Of a stretch of 64,000 nt of DNA, positions 50,385 to 63,993 are shown piece by piece. Origin of the DNA: Tubulanus polymorphus (Eukaryota; Animalia; Nemertea). Below the pieces are notes generated by a model. The model was not told the origin of the DNA. It ran no database searches and saw nothing but the letters and a program-made list of their open reading frames with translations. Both the position numbers and the translations under genes were made by a program. The stretch lies in NCBI RefSeq assembly GCF_964204645.1, contig NC_134031.1, positions 18,979,910-19,043,909 on the forward strand, in the 5' to 3' direction. Each line of letters starts with the position of its first letter. Positions within the stretch are counted from its first letter, which is position 1.

Positions 50385-50697
50385 CCTGCACTGATATTGA
50401 TAAGTGACAAGCTGCGGTAAGCCGCTAATCATCAGCGTCTTATACCAGACACTGTCACTGCCATACGTTCTATGCGCGAACCCGCGCTGATTTACATCGT
50501 CCGGTGGCGCCGCCTCGCGACATAAATTACAAACCGTCCGGTGGCGCCGCCGAGTGAGATAACCGCGAACCAACCCGGAAATCAATACATCGGAAGAGAA
50601 GTACCCGGATAATGACATCAGCCTAAATTATTCTCCATTTTACGGATTTTCTTTCTAAATTTACACGTTTTCAGGGCTGTTAATATACGACAACGAT
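50385..50697. promoter_or_regulatory. Bidirectional promoter between SNAPC4 (-) and VAMP (+)
   Basis: CpG-rich stretch of about 300 bp between a minus-strand donor at ~50385 and a plus-strand donor at 50698. CCGGTGGCGCCGCC occurs twice (~50501 and ~50538). Confidence 0.65.
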
Positions 50698-53600
50698 GTA
50701 AGTAACTGCGCTCAAGGTTTTAAACTACCCCCTGAATCGAAAAAACTATCATAAATCGTCGTTCGATCGTCAGATTTCACTGGAAACCGACGTGAAAATG
50801 TTGACGTGAAATGATGATTCACTGAAAATTTGACATTTCTCGTATCTCGTAATGTTCAGGCCTCACACATCCACATCGAGATATCTCGATGTGGAATCGA
50901 CTGATTTCATTTGTTTTTTGACCGTGTGTTTAACCAACCCATTACACTGCCTGATCTGAATTATCTGAATTAGCATTTTATGAGCAGTATTTTGGCTTTT
51001 TTGCTCGAGAGCAAATTTATGAGGGCGGTCTGCTGGCTGGGTGGGATAGGGGGTGGGCATGATGTTTAGGGATCGAAGGCGTTCTAGGGTATGATTTAGA
51101 TAATGATTACATCTGATTCTAGTTTATGGTGGGCTTGTTTCAGTATTTGAGGAAAACTTAAAAATATTTTTAAGCCGTGCATGAAAAAATAGGCTGGATT
51201 GCAATTGCGTCATATGTATTTCGACAGCTTCAATGAATCAGTTTAAGTAAGATTAGTTGATGATAGATTTATTAGATTTATTTCGGAAATAATCAATTGT
51301 AAAATGTCGCCAGGTCTCAACCACCGACTGGAGCACCACCTCAGGGAGGCCAACCCGGGTAAGTTTTAAAATATCTGTCGTTTTGTGTTACAAGTGATGG
51401 ATATATATATATATATGTACATACGCAGTGTGCCAGTTTTAATTTCCTTTGTTAAGGTATGATTACCCAATTCCTAACAGGAAACTAAATAGATTTCTGC
51501 TTAAGACGTTTTTATTATTTCATGCATGAGGTTTTGTGTGTGTGTGAATAGAACTGCTTTTTTCACAGTTTCCCATGCGTCACTTCCTCACATTTTTTCT
51601 GAGTATAGAATTTACGTTTAGAATTTATGTTCGCCTAAAATAGAATTTTGTGCTTTTCCATTGAAGCGTTGGGTGTCTCAGATTCAGTAAAAACCTTTAG
51701 TAATCGCATGTTGGTTCACTGTTCAGAGTAGAAGGAGGCACTGATGTGTGTATTTCAGATAAGAAAATGTTTGGACTGGGCAAATGGAATTAACGGGACT
51801 CAGGGAAAATCAGGCAATTTCTAGATTCACTTTTCAGAGAATTCTGATTCTTTTCTTGAAAATCAGGGAATTTGAATTTTAAGTACTTGCTCCTGTTGAG
51901 TGGGCACGAGGAATCTCTTGCAAAGAAACGACCCTCACTGAGGATTTATTCCTGGAAATTTTCATCAAGGGTCGGGGAACAATCCGGGGATTCCCTGATC
52001 TGTAATAACCCGAGGGAGATGTTGACTAAGGGTGGCCTAACCGCATGTATCACCATATATGGCTGTATTCTGGTGTGAATGCTTTGGTCTCGCAGCATAA
52101 GGCGCTGTAGTTAATCTTTGACATATTGGTTAATTTGAATAATTAATTATCGCCTATTTAATTAGCTGTTAATGAGCTATTTGTAGCTTCGCAGTAGTAT
52201 ATTCTGTATATGTAGTCAATTATTTATTTAAATGTCTCTGTAGTTGTAATGTAGCTAACCACTGTCAAACATGAATATATTTTACGAGATATTTCTTGTT
52301 TTTTATGTCAGATTTTGTGTATTTCTGAAGGTTCATGATTTATAAAGGATCTCTTATGTCATTGATAAATGTTGGCTGATAAAAATTCTTTTTCAAATTT
52401 GAAATGATCTGTGAATACATTAGTAGATAAGTGTTTAGAGTTAGCCCAGGATGGCTGTGCTGAACTTCCAGTTCATTTTCACTGAGTTTACGGTAATTCA
52501 GAACTGTTGAACTGAGTTCAGTGGATAAACTCAACTATTAGACCGTCCCCAGGAAGAAGTTATTATTACCTATTTAGAAAACTGGCCCCTGCATCCATTT
52601 CCAACATTGAGTTAAAACATTGAAAATGATTTTGAACTAAATAATTAATTCTAGATTCAAACTGAACTGGGAACTGTTTAACTGGGGCCTGAGGCTGGTT
52701 GCATAGTCATGGCTTTGTTCAGTGTGCAGCCAACTTAGTTCTATAGCTGATTCAAAAACTTAACACCAGTCTAAGATCACTTTGGCTCTATTGCCAGTCT
52801 AACAATTTGAGACCAGTCTTAAGATTTAAGACCACTTCTGGACTTAAGCCACAGTTATGCAACCAGCCCTTGGGTTTTAAGAATCGTGGAATCTTAGGGC
52901 CTACCTGAAATGAAATGCAACATAATCAAAGACAATTTCAAGGTTTTCCACTTTGTCTGATGTAAACGATTTTACTGTTTCTATTCAGGGCGACCGATGA
53001 GTAAGTAATAATAGTAGCATCATTTACACACTACTGATCATGCAAAACAGGGATTGAATTCAGATGAAACTTTGAATTCGATCTCTCACCGAGTCCAGTT
53101 CCAGAGTCAAGACTTTAAAAAGTCTAGTTGAGTTGATTTTAATCTCGCCAATCACCTTTAGGACTCTGGATCTGGCGACACTTTTTTACATATACTTTAA
53201 GACATATTTTAATGCATTAAACTTCTTTGATCTTATAATAACATATTTAGAAAGATACGTTTTTATCTGTGTGTCAATTAAATCCTCAGAATTATAGTCG
53301 GCATCTTGTTTGTGTGGAAAAAAATCGATCTAAACTTTAAATTCTTCTATTTTTTGCTCGGTTTCTTGAATTTTCGTAATTATCACGTTTAGGATTTTTA
53401 CATTTTCAATCATCTCAGGTTATAATACATATCTATGCATTATAGAACAGAACATTTTCTTTTATATGTTTGTATTTTCTTCTGGAAATATATCTTTATG
53501 CTTTTGATGTTTTGCATAAGAATTGCGGAAAAAGTGATTTAGAATGTTCGTCCGTCATCATCATGGAATTTAAGTGAAATCACTTTTAATTGCATCAGGA

Positions 53601-56600
53601 AAGATTTTCCATATTTTTAGCACCGATCAAAAGTGTTTTTATCTTTTTCGAATATTTTGCATGTAATCATATAGAAAAACGTGTATAATATTCAAAATTA
53701 GCTTTAGAGATTGTAAAATCCAGATTTAGGGTCTTATTTATGGCGCCAGTTTCAGAGAGAGCTGTGGAAAATAATTTCGGTTATGAACTGGACTGCGATC
53801 AGATTTCGATGTCTAATTTATATGCATTTTGATATTTACAGGTCAGCTCCCGGAGTTCCGCAGGGAGGCAGTAAACGCCTTCAACAAACACAAGCGCAAG
53901 TCGACGAGGTACGAATGATAGACACAATGAAAATTACTGTACACAGTAAACCTCTTCTAACTATGACAAAAACGAAATTTTCTGATTCCCTCGTATTTCT
54001 TTTGTCCTGAGTTCGGCTATGCGAAGTTAACCGTAATTTTCAGGGTTCGATTGATGTGAAAAAATATGAAAAATTGACGAGTGCTTAAAAAAAATATGAT
54101 AAGTTCCGATGTTTAATTAAAAGGATTTGAAAAATATGTAAAATCCTGAATTCATCAACCTGACCGACCCGTGTATTTTTTTTTCTGTAAAAACTACGAA
54201 ATTTCTCTTTAAATTCGTTTTTTCTCGTAGGTTGTGGATATTATGCGGGTAAATGTCGATAAAGTTTTGGAACGTGATCAAAAATTATCAGAATTAGACG
54301 GACGTGCAGGTACGTAAACTGAGTCACAGTGTGTGTGTGTGTGTGTCGCTCATCTCAACCAGCTACTGAAACACATCCAGAAAACATGGCCGCCTTCATA
54401 TTCCTCTCTATGACATCATCAAATCGGGACCACCGGCGTGCGTTTAGTCAAGATAACCCGATCAAAATTCAATCTACTTTTGTCTAGATTCTGTATAAAA
54501 AAAATAGATAATCACTCTCGATAAACTCGGATGGATCTTTAGACTTCATCATAATTCGTGGAATTTGAGAAATTATGGATAGATTTCAATTGAATCTTAG
54601 AACAAATCCGGCATCGTTGTCCTAAAATACACACTAGCGACACCTGGTGGTTCCTAGCTTGTCCCAAGTAGCTTGCAGAGTCCACATTGTCCAGTGATTT
54701 ATGACTCATTAGATTTAGATTTAACTCAGTAATTCAATGATGTCATAGGAATTACATGTGGGCGGCCATCCTGAGCGTTTCTTTATCAGTCTGATTTTAT
54801 TCCGAACCATTTCGGTTCAAAACGATCTTTCTATCCCTCAATCTACAGGTGAATAAGAAATCTTTAAAACACTGGATCCAGTTCCACAATTCTGAGTGAA
54901 GAAACTCGTTGAAATTGATCTAATTTTAACCACAGACTATAGTCCATGTTTTAACGGACTATAGTCCATGTTTAAATGGACTATAGTCCATGTTTTAACG
55001 GACTATATAGTCCATGTTTAAATGGACTATAGTCCATGTTTTAACGGACTATATAGTCCATGTTTTAACGGACTATATATTCCATGTTTTAATGGACTAT
55101 AGTCCATGTTTTAACGGACTATATAGTCCATGTTTTAACGGACTATAGTCCATGTTTTAACGGACTATAGTCCATGTTTTAACGGACTATATTCCATGTT
55201 TTAACGGACTATAGTCCATGTTTTAACGGACTATATAGTCCATGTTTTAACGGACTATAGTCCATGTTTTAACGGACTATAGTCCATGTTTTAACGGACT
55301 ATAGTCCATGTTTTAACGGACTATATAGTCCATGTTTTAACGGACTATAGTCCATGTTTTAACGGACTATATAGTCCATGTTTTAACGGACTATATAGTC
55401 CATGTTTTAATTCATCAGAGTTGTTTGAGTCTCTCAACTGTTGAACTTGGTCTTGATGATAAAATCATGGCTAAAATGCGCAATATTTTCTCGTCGCTGG
55501 AATTAGTTTTTAGTTCGCTGCATGTCGCGGTTTATTCGGGTCCTGTCAGAACTTTACTCTAAGTTGCGAACATTTCTCCATCTTTCTCTTTCGAAAAAAA
55601 AAAAAACACAATCCAGTTTTCGATCCTCGTCAGAATTTTCCGGTGATGGAATTTTTTTTTGCTGTCCGTTTTTTTGTTGAGTGAGATGAGTTTCCGTTTT
55701 TATTTTCTGTACAGATGCTTTACAAGCGGGTGCGTCACAATTTGAGGCGAGCGCCGGAAAACTGAAACGGAAATATTGGTGGAAGAATTGCAAGGTATTT
55801 TGTGTTAACATGCATGTCGTATCCCTCCCGCCTCTCCTCGCGCCTCTCCTCGCGCTCTCACGTGGAACCTCGTTAAAACAAAGTGAACCAGAAAATCTGT
55901 TGTTTCTACTGATTATCCAGTTATGATATTACAATCAAACTTGAAGTATTTAAGTCATTTCTGTCCGGCTTCAAATAGACACTAAGTATTTGGACTATTT
56001 TCAAATATTCTGGCTTGGAACAAAATGCTGAATTTGTCAGTTAGGTCCTTATATCCAAATTTGTTATAACGAATGTTCCACTGTAAATGTATATTCAACT
56101 CCTAGTCATATCTGAAATCAAGAGTTCCACTGGTTGGATTTCTTACATTTGACTCTTAAGCTTCATCGACCATGAACAAAATTTATTAGCTTAAGAGTCC
56201 AATTAAAACATTTAACCAGGAACTGGATTCTGATCCAGTACTGCTGGTACTGACTCGAATACTGATTCAGTTGCGTGGATACTGATTCAGTACTGCAGGT
56301 ACTCACTCAGTACCTCCGTACTCACTGAGTATGGCGGGTACTCACTCAGTAGCATGGGTACTGACTCAGTTCCGTCGGTCTTCAGACCCTAAAAACATCG
56401 AGTTTTAAAACGGCACCGCTTCATTATATATCTTCACTTGCTTAATTTGACAATTGAGTTTTTATACTGGTACAGGTGACCTTGACTCCGTGCATGTCTG
56501 CCCAGGGTTTGCACGTGTTGAACTTGAATAGTCCCAGGGAATATTTTGAAAGTCGTCAGTTAAAACCATGGTTTCTAAATGTTACTATGGTGGATCTCAA

Positions 56601-59600
56601 CTAGATTGAGGATTTACCCCTAGGGATAACTCTGATACTCAGTCTATGAAACCAGGCCCAGGGGCTGGTTCCATAGACAGGGCTTAGACTTAAGACTGGT
56701 CTAAGACAAACTTCGTTCTATAGCCGATCTAACAACTTAAGACCAGTCTTAAGGTTTAAGACCACTTTTGGTCTTAAGTCCTGACTATGGAACCGACCCG
56801 AGAAACTCAAATTTTTGGTTTAATCACTATTGGTTACTTCATATTTTCAATGATGAGCACAACATTTCAAACTTAACCGTTTCGAAGTAGATATCATCAA
56901 ACTGACGCCCTTGATGGCTGTTTCAGAACAATTTCATTTGCGTTATTGGAAACAGTATTAAGTTATGAATAGCAACCAATGATTCCGAATTTTTGAGATG
57001 AAGAAAATGATGTTTTCAAGCCCCGGGGCGATGTTGAGAAAGCTATATTTATCAAGATGACGTTTGTTCAAACATTGATAATCAATTTGTCTCGAAGGAG
57101 AACGTCTCGTTCTATTCCTATAAATGTCTCCACACTTAACCTTTCAATCTCGTTGACCTTTAACGGCGTTCTTTGAGATGCAGTCAGTTTGAATCGCTGT
57201 TTCATATTTTTGATACTAGAGAAAATACATCACACTTTTCTAATAGTCGTGCTTGAATCAAGCTTTTCGGGTTGAAATGTTGCTAGAACTGTCGGGATCC
57301 TGAACTGAGTCCGACAGTGGTCTTGAATCTTAAGACTGGATCCAGTATTTTTGAAATGAATATTTCTGCAAATAGTTTCTCAGACTATTTCAAGTGAGAA
57401 ATATTTTTGAATAAAAATCAATAATCAATACATTTATAATCTGATGACCAAAACCAACAATTGATGATTTAACAATTTTTCCCGACAGTTTTGACTAGTG
57501 GGATACCCGCAGTGCTACTGTGGCAATCGAAGATTCCACGTATGGCCCACCAGGTGTCGCTAGTAGTTACTCGGTCTTCGGCGTTCAATTTCTTCTACAT
57601 TTCAATTAAAACTCAATTTTTTCCAAAATGAATCGATTATCGATGAAAACTAAACCGATATCTGAAAAGAAAAATGAATTGTATAATTGGTCGGTGCTGT
57701 GATAATATATGGATTCTGGAGTCTAAACATTCAGTTCAAATTTCATCGAAAATGAACTGATTTTGACAACGAACGACCTATTGCTCGTCACGCCATCTGG
57801 TGGGAAATCTGGTGTTACGGATTCACCATTGTTAAATCATCAACTGTGGGTTCTTTGCTCATAAACTCTGTGGAGATGAATATTAGTCTCGTCATGTTAT
57901 AATCTATTATTATCAATTCAATGTTGTTCAGTGATTATTCTTATGTTCTTGTTGTTTTAAACAGAAAGTTTACAAGCCGGTGCCAATCAGTTTCAAACCG
58001 CTACCGTGCGAATAAGGAGGAAATATTTCTGGCAAAATTGCAAGGTTGAAAAATCATATTTCATTTTTTTTTTTAAATTCTTCTTCCGTTTGAAATTTCC
58101 GACTTTACTCTGAAAAAATGCTTCGGTCTTTCCGTCGAAACGTAACGGTTCTTCTCGGAAATATTCTCACTTTTCTCTCTGAATTCTTTCGGTTTGAAAA
58201 AAGAGAAAATTTAATTTCAAAAACTGCGACATTTTCTTCTAAAAGAAAAACAGGAAAATTAAATGTTGGAAGAAATTACAGAGTTTTAGGTTTAAGAATC
58301 AGATGAAATCACCAGAGACTCCGAACTTGGCATCCAAAAAAACCCACTTAAGGATGAATTCAACCCCTCTAAAATCCTGAGATGTGGAGATGACTGAATC
58401 ACTGATAAATTTTCCAACATTTATTTTTGCTAGTTGAGATGGAATTCTTTAAAAGTGCATGCGATTTGACCTTGAGGTCTGTAGAGGTCGGTTGTGGGTA
58501 GCGTTTCATTTTCAGCTTCTCCGTGAAAAACTTTTAAAATTAACTGTAGAATTCTCTACTTTTCATTTGAAAGAGAAGAAAATCACTATTTGAAGTAGTT
58601 CTTTAGCGGCTAGGACTTTCTTAGTCGTCGGAGTTCGGGAGGTGGATTCATCCTAGATAAATCTTTCGGACAGAAGGTTTTACATCGGCACAATGACTTT
58701 CTACAGTGCTGCCCCCTATTATGGTTGCGGAATAAGGTAGCGTGCGAATTGGGAATGTTTTTTTTTTCTATCAGCGGTGTTGGTTATTAGGGACCCGGCT
58801 TCTACTACAGAGAAACCAAGGCTGGGTGCAGATTTAGACCCGGGGTCCGTGAACCCAGTTCCACAGTTCAGATTAGACTTTTAGATCTGACTGTAAATCG
58901 AAGTGCCCCTGTTTTATAAACTTGGATCCAGTTCCAAACAGTTGGCCCCACTCCGCGCGGTTGCGCCAACGCGCGGGATTTACGCGAAGTAGCAGAAACA
59001 AACATGGTCACATTTTGAACGTTAGAAATTGTACATGAATGGGGGACCTCAGTGGTTAAGATGGATCTTTGAACGGATCTCTGACAACTGACTACACTTC
59101 TACAGTCAATTCTACAGATTTAAGTCAGATTTCCACCAATATCTATGGAACTGGATACTGGTCTATGAAGACCGGCTGCTCTGAATGAAAATGGCCCCGA
59201 GAATCTTAAGCTGATTGGGGTTGATCAGTGGGCCTGCCCCACAGCTACAGCTGAGGAAGGAATCTGATGAACTGTCCAACAGCTACGGCTGAGGAATCTC
59301 TAATGAACTGTGGGTACCCATCTGCCCCACAGCTACGGCTGAGGAATCTCTATTGAACTGTGGGTACCAACTGCCCCACAGCTATGGCTGAGGAATCTCT
59401 AATGAACTGCACTGGTACCCACTGCCCCACAGCTATGGCTGAGGAATCTAATGAACAGTACTGGTACTCACTGCCCCACAGCTATGGCTGAGGAATCTCT
59501 AATGAACAGTACTGGTACCCACTGCCCCACAGCTATGGCTGAGGAATCTCTAATGAACAGTACTGGTACTCACCGCCCCACAGCTATGGCTGAGGAATCT

Positions 59601-62600
59601 CTAATGAACAGTACTGGTACCCACTGCCCCACAGCTATGGCTGAGGAATCTCTAATGAACAGTACTGGTACCCACCGCCCCACAGCTATGGCTGAGGAAT
59701 CTCTTATGAACAGTACTGGTACCCACCGCCCCACAGCTATGGCTGAGGAATTTCTAATGAACAGTACTGGTACCCACTGCCCCACAGCTATGGCTGAGGA
59801 ATCTCTAATGAACTGTGGGTACCCACTGCCCCACAGCTATGGCTGAGGAATCTCTAATGAACTGTACTGGTACCCACTGCCCCACAGCTATGGCTGAGGA
59901 ATCTCTAATGAACTGTGGGTACCCACTGCCCCACAGCTATGGCTGAGGAATCTCTAATGAACTGTACTGGTACCCACTGCCCCACAGCTATGGCTGAGGA
60001 ATCTCTAATGAACAGTACTGGTACCCACTGCCCCACAGCTATGGCTGAGGAATCTCTAATGAACAGTACTGGTACCCACTGCCCCACAGCTATGGCTGAG
60101 GAATCTCTAATGAACTGTACTGGTACCCACTGCCCCACAGCTATGGCTGAGGAATCTCTAATGAACAGTACTGGTACCCACTGCCCCACAGCTATTGCTG
60201 AGGAATATAATGAACAGTACTGGTACCCACTGCCCCACAGCTATGGCTGAGGAATCTCTAATGAACAGTACTGGTACCCACTGCCCCACAGCTATGGCTG
60301 AGGAATCTCTAATGAACAGTACTGGTACCCACTGCCCCACAGCTATGGCTGAGGAATCTCTAATGAACAGTACTGGTACTCACTGCCCCACAGCTATGGC
60401 TGAGGAATATAATGAACAGTACTGGTACCCACTGCTCCACAGCTATGGCTGAGGAATCTCTAATGAACAGTACTGGTACCCACTGCCCCACAGCTATGGC
60501 TGAGGAATATAATGAACAGTACTGGTACCCACTGCCCCACAGCTATGGCTGAGGAATCTCTAATGAACAGTACTGGTACCCACTGCCCCACAGCTATGGC
60601 TGAGGAATCTCTAATGAACAGTACTGGTACCCACTGCCCCACAGCTATGGCTGAGGAATATAATGAACAGTACTGGTACCCACTGCCCCACAGCTATGGC
60701 TGAGGAATCTCTAATGAACAGTACTGGTACCCACTGCCCCACAGCTATGGCTGAGGAATCTCTAATGAACAGTACTGGTACCCACTGCCCCACAGCTATG
60801 GCTGAGGAATCTCTAATGAACAGTACTGGTACCCACTGCCCCACAGCTATGGCTGAGGAATCTCTAATGAACAGTACTGGTACCCACTGCCCCACAGCTA
60901 TGGCTGAGGAATATAATGAACAGTACTGGTACCCACTGCCCCACAGCTATGGCTGAGGAATCTCTAATGAACAGTACTGGTACCCACTGCCCCACAGCTA
61001 TGGCTGAGGAATCTCTAATGAACAGTACTGGTACCCACTGCCCCACAGCTATGGCTGAGGAATCTCTAATGAACTATAACACGTCATGTTTTCAGATGAT
61101 GTTAGTTATTGGTGGTATAGTGCTGGTTATTGTAATCATTATAATTGGTAAGAACAGGAATCAGCGAAATATTTAATAAACGGCGAATTCATTTTGAAAA
61201 TTGAAACTATGGATCGTCTTCCATGTTTATTCATCGATGTTGTAGAGGTGACCCTGAATATAAAACACACCAAGTGTCGCCACCTACTGAGTGTTTACTA
61301 TACTAACTAGCGTGGATGTATCGTTTATGTCGTGTATAGTTCACCGATTGTACCGTAGCGATTTCTCTTCCAAACCTACCACCAGGGGGCGCCTTTGAGG
61401 GGCTTAAGTCTTAACTGACTGACTGAACCTCTGAATTCGGATGTGTAGATGAGGTAGATGATCTCTGTCGTACAATCGGTCAGCGTTACGCACTATTGTT
61501 CATTATAGTGATTGAAAAACCAGCGATATATTTAATCATCATTAGGCACCAGTTTTATAGAATTCATACTCTGTCTATAAAACTGTGGCCTCAATGGTAC
61601 AAAAATATACCACAATATGAGACGCTTTCATTGATTCCAGTTTTGAGGAAATTGCCGCAAGAGAACTTCAGAAAAAACCGGGAATATAAAACCTTGGGTT
61701 CTGAACAAACTGACGCAAAATTCTGTCCTAGGATCAGTTGAACAATCATGGCTGAGATTTACGCCCAATCTAAGACCATCTTATTTCCGAAGCCAATCTA
61801 ACAATTTGACACTATATTTTAACCCTTTCAGTGCTTACTTATCAATACCCAAAATATAATTTTAAAATTTACTGAAAGGGTTTAATCGCAGCATTGGGGC
61901 CTGAACGAAAGAACCCTATAAAACCTCAAGTACTTGATCCTTTTTGAAACTGGTATAAATGAATGCGTCAATTACCCCCCCCCCCCCCTCAATATCCCCC
62001 TTCCCCCTCCTCAATACCCCTCCCCCCACCACCACCTACATATTATATTTGTATGGGATCTGATGATGATGTTAATTGATTTATTTACAGATGATGATTA
62101 TAATGGGTGTTGTTATCGGCCTTGTTGTTATAGTGGTTGGATACTGGCTTTATACTAAGTTCCATACACCTGCCGCAGCTGCTGCTCCAGCTGCCGGAAC
62201 GGCAGCCGGTACCGGCGCGCCGCCGCCCGCAGCCGGTCCGAGTCCCGCATCGGGCCCGGCCGCCGATTAGTCTCTTTAATCCATTTTGACTCCTACGATG
62301 CCCATTGGTAATGATAAAAATATCGAACCGTCAAAAATAACGATTCTATTTCGTGATTAGCTTTCACCGCCGCGTCAGGCGTGGTCGCAACTGATACTCA
62401 CCAGGTGGCGTTGCGACCGTGCCGAGTGTGCATATTTCTTTGCATGTTACCTATCTGCATCATTTACGATTTTCTCAGTTTTTATCTTCGTCATTTTTCA
62501 TTCTGATGATATTTTGTCTCTTTCTCTTCGTAAAAGTGTTTTCGATGATTTATCGCGGCTTCGCTTTAGTTTTTCGGTGACCCCTGGCTCCACACGGCCT

Positions 62601-63993
62601 TGCAGGGGTCACCGGCCCCGAACGATTTTGTAGAGATGCGCACCACCACCTGTTCTGGTGAACTTCAAAATATTCAAAACTTTTCGCTGAAATCTTAGAT
62701 CGTAATTTCCAAAAAATTCGTCAAAACTTCTGGCTTTGATGGATGAATAAAGAATTAAAGAATAAGTTTTCGAAGCGCTATTTAAAGATGTCATGATGTA
62801 ATATGACTTGATGAATATTGATAGAAGTAAATAAGACTTAGTGAACTGTGGGCGGGAATTGTGAGCCTTTCTGGATTAAAGAGAATCCAAACTCAGAATA
62901 ATTGAAATTACTGATTCGAAACAAGCCTTGAATTTCTCCAACGCAAAACACTAAAAGTGTTCGTAGTGTTATTGATTTTGTTTTGTCCGTACAATATTTT
63001 TGCAAGAAACTGATTCTGAATATTCTGGATCCTGAGATAAATGTATTATACGCAGGTATCAATGTGCATCCTGGAACCCAGCTCTTCGTACATGCATCAA
63101 TTGTTGATACCTGAGTGAGCCTAGCACCGGCCTAGTTCGAGTTTTAAAGTCCTGCTCCTCACCTCTCTGAGCTCTTACCATATTCAGAATCAGTTCACAT
63201 AAATTCACTGTTAGTTAAATGTTGTTTTATTCACCGCGTTTTTTCTCTCTCTCTCTGAAAGTCGAGCAGACGACTTTCGATCGACCAATCACCATCGAGC
63301 TCTGGACGCGAGGATTTTGAGTTGTTTTCGGTTTACCTATGCCGTCACATTTGAGCCACTGGCGCGGTACCGCGGTTCTGACTTGTGTTCACGATTCGAA
63401 TCTACTCGTACCTTACAAATTGCATCCCAATATCGTTATCTGATATAATTTGAACTTTGTCAAGCATCTCATATCTCAGAATTTGTGGTAAACCTCTTGT
63501 CCCATGAGCAATCATTTCAGAAATGTTGCTGGCAATGAGAGATAATCCCCGATTACTATGACCGGTCTGCATTAGATTCATCTGTTCCGGAACAACAGAC
63601 TAGAAAGTGAAACTGAACCTGGCACAATTATTTATTTCGAGTTGGCAAAATGACCAAGAGAAAATTGAGACAAAAATTTTTCTAATTGGTCACCATAGCA
63701 TAAAATTTTTGACCGAATTCCGCAGTTGTTGGATTTTGTTTGAATCTAGAGTTGATTTTGATTAGAAGTTGGCTCTAGATTCAAATTCCGATTGGGAACT
63801 GCGCAACCAAATTCTGACAGTTTGTTTAATAAGAAATGTCCAGCTACAGTTGAGTGTAATGTACGCCGATCTTGTGATATCTGCACGGCGTGTTGTGTTG
63901 TGACTTTGTTGTTTTATTTTGTATATTTTATTGTTTTATAGATGTGGATTATTTTGATATCTGTGATAGTAGTTATTTTAGTCATTATCATCG
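50696..63993 (+). CDS. VAMP2: Synaptobrevin / VAMP1-2-3-type R-SNARE, alternatively spliced; 3' end beyond the window
   Basis: Start codon split AT|G (50696-50697, then 51314). Exons 51314-51358, 52989-53000, 53842-53908 ([12 protein letters not shown]), 54231-54309 ([26 protein letters not shown]), 55715-55794 or 57965-58044, then transmembrane exons 61096-61147, 62091-62270 or 63942-63993. The symbol denotes the family, not one-to-one orthology. Confidence 0.93.
52693..52869. mobile_element. MITE, TTAAGACC family copy
   Basis: GGCTGGTTGCATAG ... TTATGCAACCAGCC, with internal similarity to 33380-33519. Confidence 0.7.
52989..53000 (+). CDS. 12-nt frame-preserving microexon of synaptobrevin
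   Basis: ttttactgtttctattcag|GGCGACCGATGA|gtaagt. Phase 2 at both ends, matching the flanking exons. Confidence 0.65.
   Translation, partial: GDR
54934..55410. repeat. 22/24-bp minisatellite with palindromic core
   Basis: Unit GGACTATAGTCCATGTTTTAAC (some units with an extra TA), about 21 copies. Confidence 0.95.
55715..55794 (+). CDS. Synaptobrevin SNARE C-terminal exon, variant A (canonical)
   Basis: [27 protein letters not shown]; 80 nt; acag|...|gtattt. Confidence 0.92.
56235..56375. repeat. Degenerate ~20-bp tandem repeat
   Basis: About 6-7 GTACTGACTCAGTACTGCGG-like units. Confidence 0.6.
56662..56799. mobile_element. MITE, TTAAGACC family copy
   Basis: GGTTCCATAG ... CTATGGAACC termini with the same internal sequence. 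It abuts another repeat (~56565-56660) that is the reverse complement of ~27930-28025. Confidence 0.7.
57965..58044 (+). CDS. Synaptobrevin SNARE C-terminal exon, variant B (duplicated, divergent)
   Basis: [27 protein letters not shown]; 80 nt with the same phases as variant A; long pyrimidine tract then acag; donor AAG|gttgaa. Confidence 0.85.
59235..61075. repeat. 51-bp minisatellite
   Basis: Unit CTGCCCCACAGCTATGGCTGAGGAATCTCTAATGAACAGTACTGGTACCCA, about 36 copies, with 48- and 49-bp variants. Confidence 0.97.
61096..61147 (+). CDS. Synaptobrevin transmembrane exon 1 (internal, 52 nt)
   Basis: ttttcag|[18 protein letters not shown]|gtaaga. Confidence 0.85.
61819..61885. mobile_element. 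piggyBac-like MITE, internally deleted copy
   Basis: TTAACCCTTTCAGT...ACTGAAAGGGTTTAA, only about 65 bp, abutting a fragment of the TTAAGACC MITE family. Confidence 0.6.
62091..62270 (+). CDS. Synaptobrevin transmembrane exon 2 (terminal, with Pro/Ala/Gly-rich luminal tail)
   Basis: tttacag|[59 protein letters not shown]; AATAAA at ~62746. Confidence 0.8.
   Translation: MMIIMGVVIGLVVIVVGYWLYTKFHTPAAAAAPAAGTAAGTGAPPPAAGPSPASGPAAD
63942..63993 (+). CDS. Synaptobrevin transmembrane exon 3 (internal, 52 nt)
   Basis: ttgttttatag|[18 protein letters not shown]|gtaagt; same length and phases as TM exon 1. Confidence 0.82.

Follow-up and report, generated by a model that had tools for sequence, protein, structure and literature searches.

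A candidate array of alternative SNARE-motif and membrane-anchor exons in the single VAMP1/2/3 gene of the nemertean Tubulanus polymorphus, with counterparts in other phyla

The stretch of DNA analyzed here, referred to as the window, comprises 64,000 nt of the palaeonemertean Tubulanus polymorphus (contig NC_134031.1, positions 18,979,910 to 19,043,909) and carries on its plus strand a v-SNARE gene of the synaptobrevin/cellubrevin type (VAMP1/2/3), the only one that the genome contains. Of the machinery that fuses membranes, synaptobrevin contributes the vesicle half, and the force of zippering reaches the membrane via layers +4 to +8 of the SNARE motif and the Trp-rich linker. At this locus, two paralogous exons, 4A and 4B, are situated downstream of the exons encoding the N-terminal half of the SNARE motif, and they are followed by three paralogous anchor exons, 5a, 5b, and 5c. 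Judged from the comparison with other animals, these exons probably constitute an ancient, lophotrochozoan-wide array of alternative exons.

The stop-to-stop reading frame around exon 4A matched VAMP proteins, including the T. polymorphus entry 'vesicle-associated membrane protein 3-like isoform X2'. The 90% protein cluster of the T. polymorphus VAMP contains the RefSeq isoforms X1, X2, and X3 with 123, 119, and 104 residues, respectively, which differ solely at the N-terminus and all contain 4A, 5c, and a short tail exon. On the exon 4A region the PF00957 profile reached 33.5 bits (curated cut-off 26.4), and the RefSeq products carry PF00957 as well. The arginine of the zero layer is present, encoded by exon e3 in a Glu-Arg-Asp-Gln-Lys context. 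When the RefSeq protein was searched in six frames against the complete assembly of 268 Mb, one VAMP1/2/3-type locus was revealed, and 4B was recovered as well. This count fits the idea of the original prediction, made from the letters of the window, that exon duplication takes the place of gene duplication in this animal.

Exons were placed by translation and exact peptide look-up, and are given in window coordinates on the plus strand; phases match and AG/GT borders occur throughout. The existence of the exons as described is close to certain. Exon 1 ends with AT (50696..50697), the first two bases of the start codon, directly followed by a GTAAGT donor. Together with the opening G of either N1 or e2 these bases yield a Met-Ser start, as in the RefSeq isoforms P0012, P0203, and P0204. 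N1 (51314..51358) is an optional micro-exon of 45 nt that keeps the phase and encodes 15 Pro/Gly/Gln-rich residues, an exact match to residues 2-16 of X1 and X2; it is missing from X3. A second optional micro-exon, N2 (52989..53000), comprises 12 nt flanked by AG and GT and encodes Ala-Thr-Asp-Glu, which accounts for the four additional residues of X1, the only isoform to contain it. The N2 pattern occurs once in the window, compared to 0 expected occurrences in shuffled sequence. Thus, the optional N-terminal micro-exon of the original prediction is present, but the number is two, both used in RefSeq isoforms. Exon e2 (53842..53908) completes the N-terminal region and opens the SNARE motif with its first layers, and e3 (54231..54309) encodes the central SNARE motif including the zero-layer Arg, ending in phase 1. 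Both are unique, as no second copy of either was found in window positions 45001-75000, a range that begins approximately 5.7 kb before the start codon and extends 10 kb beyond the last exon. In e2, a C-to-T difference at position 53902 was observed in read run X1; it affects the third base of a Val codon and is synonymous.

Exon 4A (55715..55794) encodes the canonical SNARE layers +4 to +8 and the juxtamembrane linker and occurs in all three RefSeq isoforms, whereas its paralogue 4B (57965..58044) is absent from RefSeq. Both exons are 80 nt long and equal in phase, and 14 of their 27 residues are identical. The BLOSUM62 score of 4B against 4A is 94, compared to 21 for the next best site in 30 kb, which excludes a chance resemblance. 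Layers +4 to +8 read Leu, Ala, Phe, Ala, and Leu in 4A, and Leu, Ala, Phe, Thr, and Ile in 4B; the residues of +4 to +6, which face the core, are unchanged in 4B, and those of +7 and +8 are small or hydrophobic. The 13 residues changed in 4B are mostly located on the surface and include Lys83 to Arg, Trp89 to Phe, and Lys91 to Gln (VAMP2 numbering); the linker stays basic and aromatic, with one positive charge less than that of 4A. As originally predicted, a shared N-terminal SNARE half is followed by two C-terminal SNARE exons. At the protein level, 4A does not differ from the exon-4 copies of an oyster, a chiton, and a locus of an ENA assembly (L014).

Due to the length of 80 nt, which is not a multiple of three, the frame shifts if both exons or neither are included, and in the shifted phase 4B contains a stop. 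The pair hence consists of neighboring homologous exons of equal length and phase with their own splice sites that are frame-incompatible if both or neither are included, as is typical of a mutually exclusive cluster. A TGCATG motif (Rbfox-type site) is situated at 55811-55816, 17 nt downstream of 4A. In L014 and in the annelid Owenia, TGCATG or GCATG likewise follows the A-type exon within 50 nt; it is lacking at that place in the brachiopod Lingula and in two species with a single exon 4; this is a post hoc observation on a small sample. Variants inside 4A or 4B are not listed, which is uninformative at a local density of approximately 1 per 200 nt.

Following exon 4 in phase 0, each of the three anchor exons contributes 17 hydrophobic residues, so that the expectation of at least three paralogous transmembrane exons was borne out. 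Exons 5a (61096..61147; MM/Gly-Gly type, GTAAG donor) and 5c (63942..63993; MW type, VAMP3-like, GTAAGT donor) are of equal length (52 nt) and bordered by AG and GT. The MW-type anchor exon matches the anchor of vertebrate VAMP3 and the MM-type that of VAMP1/2. Between them lies the terminal exon 5b (62091..62270), which combines an MM/Gly-Val-Val anchor with a luminal tail of 42 Ala/Pro/Gly-rich residues and its own stop, followed approximately 480-600 nt further downstream by poly(A) signals at 62746-62880. RefSeq X1-X3 contain 5c, and both 5a and 5b are absent from RefSeq. The short tail exon joined to 5c, presumably needed by 5a as well, is located 973-1007 nt beyond the window end. A scan for an acceptor followed by a hydrophobic exon, extended up to 30 kb downstream, detected 5a, 5b, and 5c and no further anchor-like exon.

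If splicing at the 5a donor fails to occur, the open frame would end at 61174-61176, with a stop overlapping an AATAAA signal; an analogous read-through is represented by the X1 isoform of an oyster. If 5a is spliced to 5c, the frame stays open and yields a Cys/Tyr-rich luminal tail that ends in the last exon, and the annotations of Lineus X3 (P0206) and of an oyster entry (P0327) contain similar 'Asp-Val...' tails. Because the 5a-5c combination stays open and comparable tails are annotated elsewhere, the anchor cluster may not be strictly exclusive. Placed after 5a, either 5c (63941-63993) or 5b (62090-62160) is read in another frame as such a Cys/Tyr-rich luminal tail.

For the comparison with other phyla, genomic loci retrieved through exact protein matches were scanned for the exon peptides of Tubulanus. 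B-type exons 4 were identified at the loci of Lingula (L018, at 22590) and Owenia (L016, at 27620) and at L014, in each case as an open frame of 80 nt with AG/GT borders situated between the A-type exon and the anchors. A further B-type copy occurs on the metagenome contig L013. The order at L014 is the same as in Tubulanus, namely e2, e3, A-type exon 4, B-type exon 4, MM, and MW. In Lingula and Owenia the B-type copy lies just downstream of the A-type copy, with a third, A-derived copy in Owenia. All B-type copies have kept 27 open codons, the phase, the AG acceptor, and the GT donor, the latter being a non-consensus GTG or GTT in every B-type copy from five sources, whereas all A-type copies possess GTA. 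An Arg at VAMP2 position 83, a residue other than Ser at 75, and a polar residue at 69 are common to the B-type copies. Invariant among them are the layer residues Leu70, Ala74, and Phe77 as well as, in the linker, Arg-Lys and Trp90-Asn92-Lys94.

Replacement differences among the B-type copies amount to 0.18-0.32, whereas silent differences are saturated (0.7-1.0); a neutral exon would have decayed over such a distance. These values show purifying selection on the orthologous candidate exons of the other phyla. In the tree, the split of A- and B-type exons received support values of 92/97 and the core B clade 95/97, and 4B of Tubulanus groups with the B-type copies of four other sources. The split of 4A and 4B appears to be older than the separation of nemerteans, brachiopods, and annelids. 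The predicted duplications are therefore not a novelty of the Tubulanus lineage: the search for the exons in related phyla, proposed together with the original prediction, yielded anchor exons and a B-type exon 4 common to a brachiopod and an annelid.

A search of 1.84 billion representative proteins with 4B alone detected two genomic gene calls that read through B-type exons, as well as one spliced mRNA contig (L015) encoding a v-SNARE with a B-type C-terminal half, which is a divergent paralogue. A canonical isoform with a B-type exon was not retrieved from these 1.84 billion proteins by the 4B query. Current gene models in several phyla seem to miss the B-type exon.

An MM-type followed by an MW-type anchor exon was observed in Liolophura (chiton), Ostrea (oyster), Owenia, and L014. 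Lingula possesses three anchor exons in the order of Tubulanus, i.e., a Gly-Gly MM type, a Gly-Val-Val type, and an MW type. Orthologues of 5a are located at the equivalent position in Lingula, Owenia, L014, a chiton, and an oyster, and those of chiton, mussel, and Lingula are used in RefSeq mRNAs. The chiton RefSeq isoforms contain either the MM or the MW anchor. For Mytilus, RefSeq isoforms combine two anchors (MM and MW) with three tails in six out of six possible ways, and in the Lingula isoforms X1-X5 three copies of e3 are mixed with two anchors. The anchor and tail start of 5b resemble the Lingula long-tail isoforms, and its Ala/Pro/Gly-rich tail is similar to the long-tail exons found in both Lingula and Owenia; this long tail is fused to an anchor exon of its own in Tubulanus.

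The three e3 copies of Lingula (L018) are arranged in tandem (18228, 18865, and 19526) and all are used in RefSeq isoforms. Owenia (L016) contains two e2-like copies (22159 and 22296). Other parts of the SNARE motif have consequently been duplicated in other lineages and not in Tubulanus. Two e3-like segments in series were also noticed in the gene models P0130, P0131, and P0187 of spiders and a mayfly, and look like tandem alternative e3 exons that were wrongly predicted as both included.

Several repeats are located in the introns of the Tubulanus gene. The intron between e3 and 4A contains a satellite at 54935-55410 with a palindromic 22-nt unit in approximately 21 copies, which is the source of most inverted repeats in the region. 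Upstream of 5a, a minisatellite of 1.8 kb (59271-61074) consists of approximately 36 copies of a 51-nt unit with 95% identity. A dispersed repeat of approximately 120 nt with at least 40 copies across chromosomes occupies 63397-63518, between 5b and 5c. A perfect 18-nt inverted pair (54633-54650 and 57547-57564) brackets 4A and was considered as a splicing switch acting by RNA loop-out. This candidate was rejected: as the downstream arm belongs to a dispersed repeat with at least 431 candidate genome copies and a read depth of approximately 200x the baseline, the pair was treated as transposon-derived and is probably incidental. No other long pairing between introns was found in the region. 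Four read runs mapped to 52300-58299 cover the introns without joints at exon borders and represent low-coverage DNA.

Taking the conserved exons together, a scheme can be proposed in which the spliceosome of Tubulanus would pick either 4A or 4B, with the frame shift or stop and nonsense-mediated decay enforcing a single choice. One of three anchors would then follow, with 5a and 5c leading to the shared short tail exon, and 5b terminating the message, with poly(A) signals of its own, after a long luminal tail. Since the layers are conserved, SNARE pairing itself would be unchanged by 4B, which should instead alter the final zippering surface and the contacts of the linker with the membrane or with regulators. 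The non-consensus donors of all B-type exons suggest that their inclusion is regulated, probably restricted to certain cell types, and low in level, and this would explain their absence from gene models.

Several observations weigh against an array that is still in use. In Tubulanus, the RefSeq models use 4A and 5c only, and 4B, 5a, and 5b are known from DNA alone. The donor of 4B, GTTGAA, is weak, next to an acceptor with a good pyrimidine tract and AG. The minisatellite ends 21 nt before the acceptor of 5a, whose function it could impair, so that the 5a branch point has to be located within the array or at its edge. A B-type exon 4 was seen in no RefSeq isoform of any species, in a comparison that did not extend to Lingula X7-X9 and Lineus X1, X2, X4, and X6. 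It was also not found at the chiton and oyster loci. In the hemichordate Ptychodera (L019, 22463-22594), exon 4 and a single MW anchor form one exon and there are no alternative copies. Because of these chiton, oyster, and hemichordate loci, the array is not universal. Finally, the tree and the selection estimates are based on only 27 codons, and the tree is suggestive.

The restriction of the RefSeq isoforms to 4A and 5c, the weak 4B donor, and the minisatellite abutting the 5a acceptor would all be expected if 4B, 5a, and 5b had been alternative exons in an ancestor and were no longer spliced in Tubulanus, leaving 4A-5c with N-terminal variants as the only products. We nevertheless regard such relic exons as unlikely, since all three exons have retained an open frame, their exact length and phase, and AG/GT borders, the silent sites are saturated against every other copy, so that a neutral exon should have decayed, and the poly(A) signals of 5b are retained. 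The weak donor is moreover common to all B-type exons across phyla and looks conserved rather than decayed. Even less room is left for separate partial gene copies or chance open frames, which appear highly improbable: the genome contains one locus, a second e2 or e3 is lacking in window positions 45001-75000, the exon order is that of Lingula, and the similarity scores are far above background. The extra exons are single, ordered, and on the same strand, and lie between the unique e2/e3 and one tail exon, in agreement with the one-gene interpretation of the original prediction. We therefore favor continued use, and 4B, 5a, and 5b are likely to be spliced in Tubulanus as members of the conserved array.

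How freely the exons combine is judged with lower confidence. The 12 products of the original prediction are arithmetic and not an observation, as N-terminal sequence is all that distinguishes the three RefSeq isoforms, each of which contains 4A and 5c. A gene using a few fixed paths, for instance 4B with one anchor only, would have a repertoire far below 12-18 products. Coordinated choice is known from many exon clusters of other genes, and we consider fixed paths a serious contender with somewhat less than an even chance. They are at variance with Mytilus, where all six anchor-by-tail combinations occur in RefSeq, and with Lingula, where e3 copies are mixed with anchors; these isoforms are model-based and may have been assembled from short reads.

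It is tempting to speculate that 4A and 4B represent an ancient, still-used cell-type switch between modules for C-terminal zippering and the linker, and that the MM/MW pair, at the level of exons, either preceded or corresponds to the split into VAMP1/2 and VAMP3, in which case vertebrates would have resolved into genes what lophotrochozoans splice. This extended scenario is tentative, and we would sooner doubt than adopt it. If the array is in use, animals with one VAMP1/2/3 gene diversify the SNARE core by splicing, beyond anchor and tail, and a natural alternative exon for exactly layers +4 to +8 and the linker offers a ready comparison for the tuning of fusion at this site. The MM and MW exons, set beside the anchors of VAMP1/2 and VAMP3, would provide a testable case of interchangeable exon and gene duplication.

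With regard to known systems, the anchor and tail part counts as known, because its combinations are already visible by annotation in RefSeq for other phyla. The SNARE-motif exon pair with the conserved B-type exon 4 appears to be unannotated wherever it was looked for. The literature covered, to which most subscription journals do not belong, yielded no account of VAMP genes with alternative exons for the SNARE motif or the anchor. The RefSeq VAMP sets of Mytilus, Liolophura, and Lingula share with Tubulanus the orthologous MM and MW anchors combined with alternative tails. They differ in that an alternative exon 4 is not annotated, although the Lingula locus contains a B-type copy, and in that a single terminal exon of Tubulanus encodes both the middle anchor and the long tail. 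VAMP1 is known to exist with alternative C-terminal tails. Such tails also occur in n-Syb of Drosophila (PMC6025963). The closest models for the array are exons 5a and 5b of SNAP-25 (PMC2581893) and exons 8a and 8b of the syntaxin gene unc-64 (PMC4946901). In C. elegans, the syntaxin gene unc-64 is spliced in a neuron-specific manner with respect to exons 8a and 8b, for which regulation by UNC-75/CELF was shown (PMC4946901). Similar to the anchor exons described here, these alternative last exons swap SNARE transmembrane anchors; unlike the Tubulanus gene, unc-64 encodes a Qa-SNARE and uses two such exons (PMC4946901). Exons 5a and 5b of vertebrate SNAP-25, which undergo mutually exclusive splicing and for which both isoforms were experimentally shown and are functionally distinct, resemble 4A and 4B as two tandem exons of the same size in a SNARE gene that swap the end of a SNARE motif and the linker (PMC2581893). 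They differ from 4A and 4B in belonging to a Qbc- and not an R-SNARE, in their vertebrate origin, and in that their use is shown, compared to a predicted use for 4B (PMC2581893). With respect to the anchors, the MM-like and MW-like types are distributed over separate genes in vertebrates, VAMP1/2 and VAMP3, respectively, whereas in Tubulanus they are found as alternative exons of one gene.

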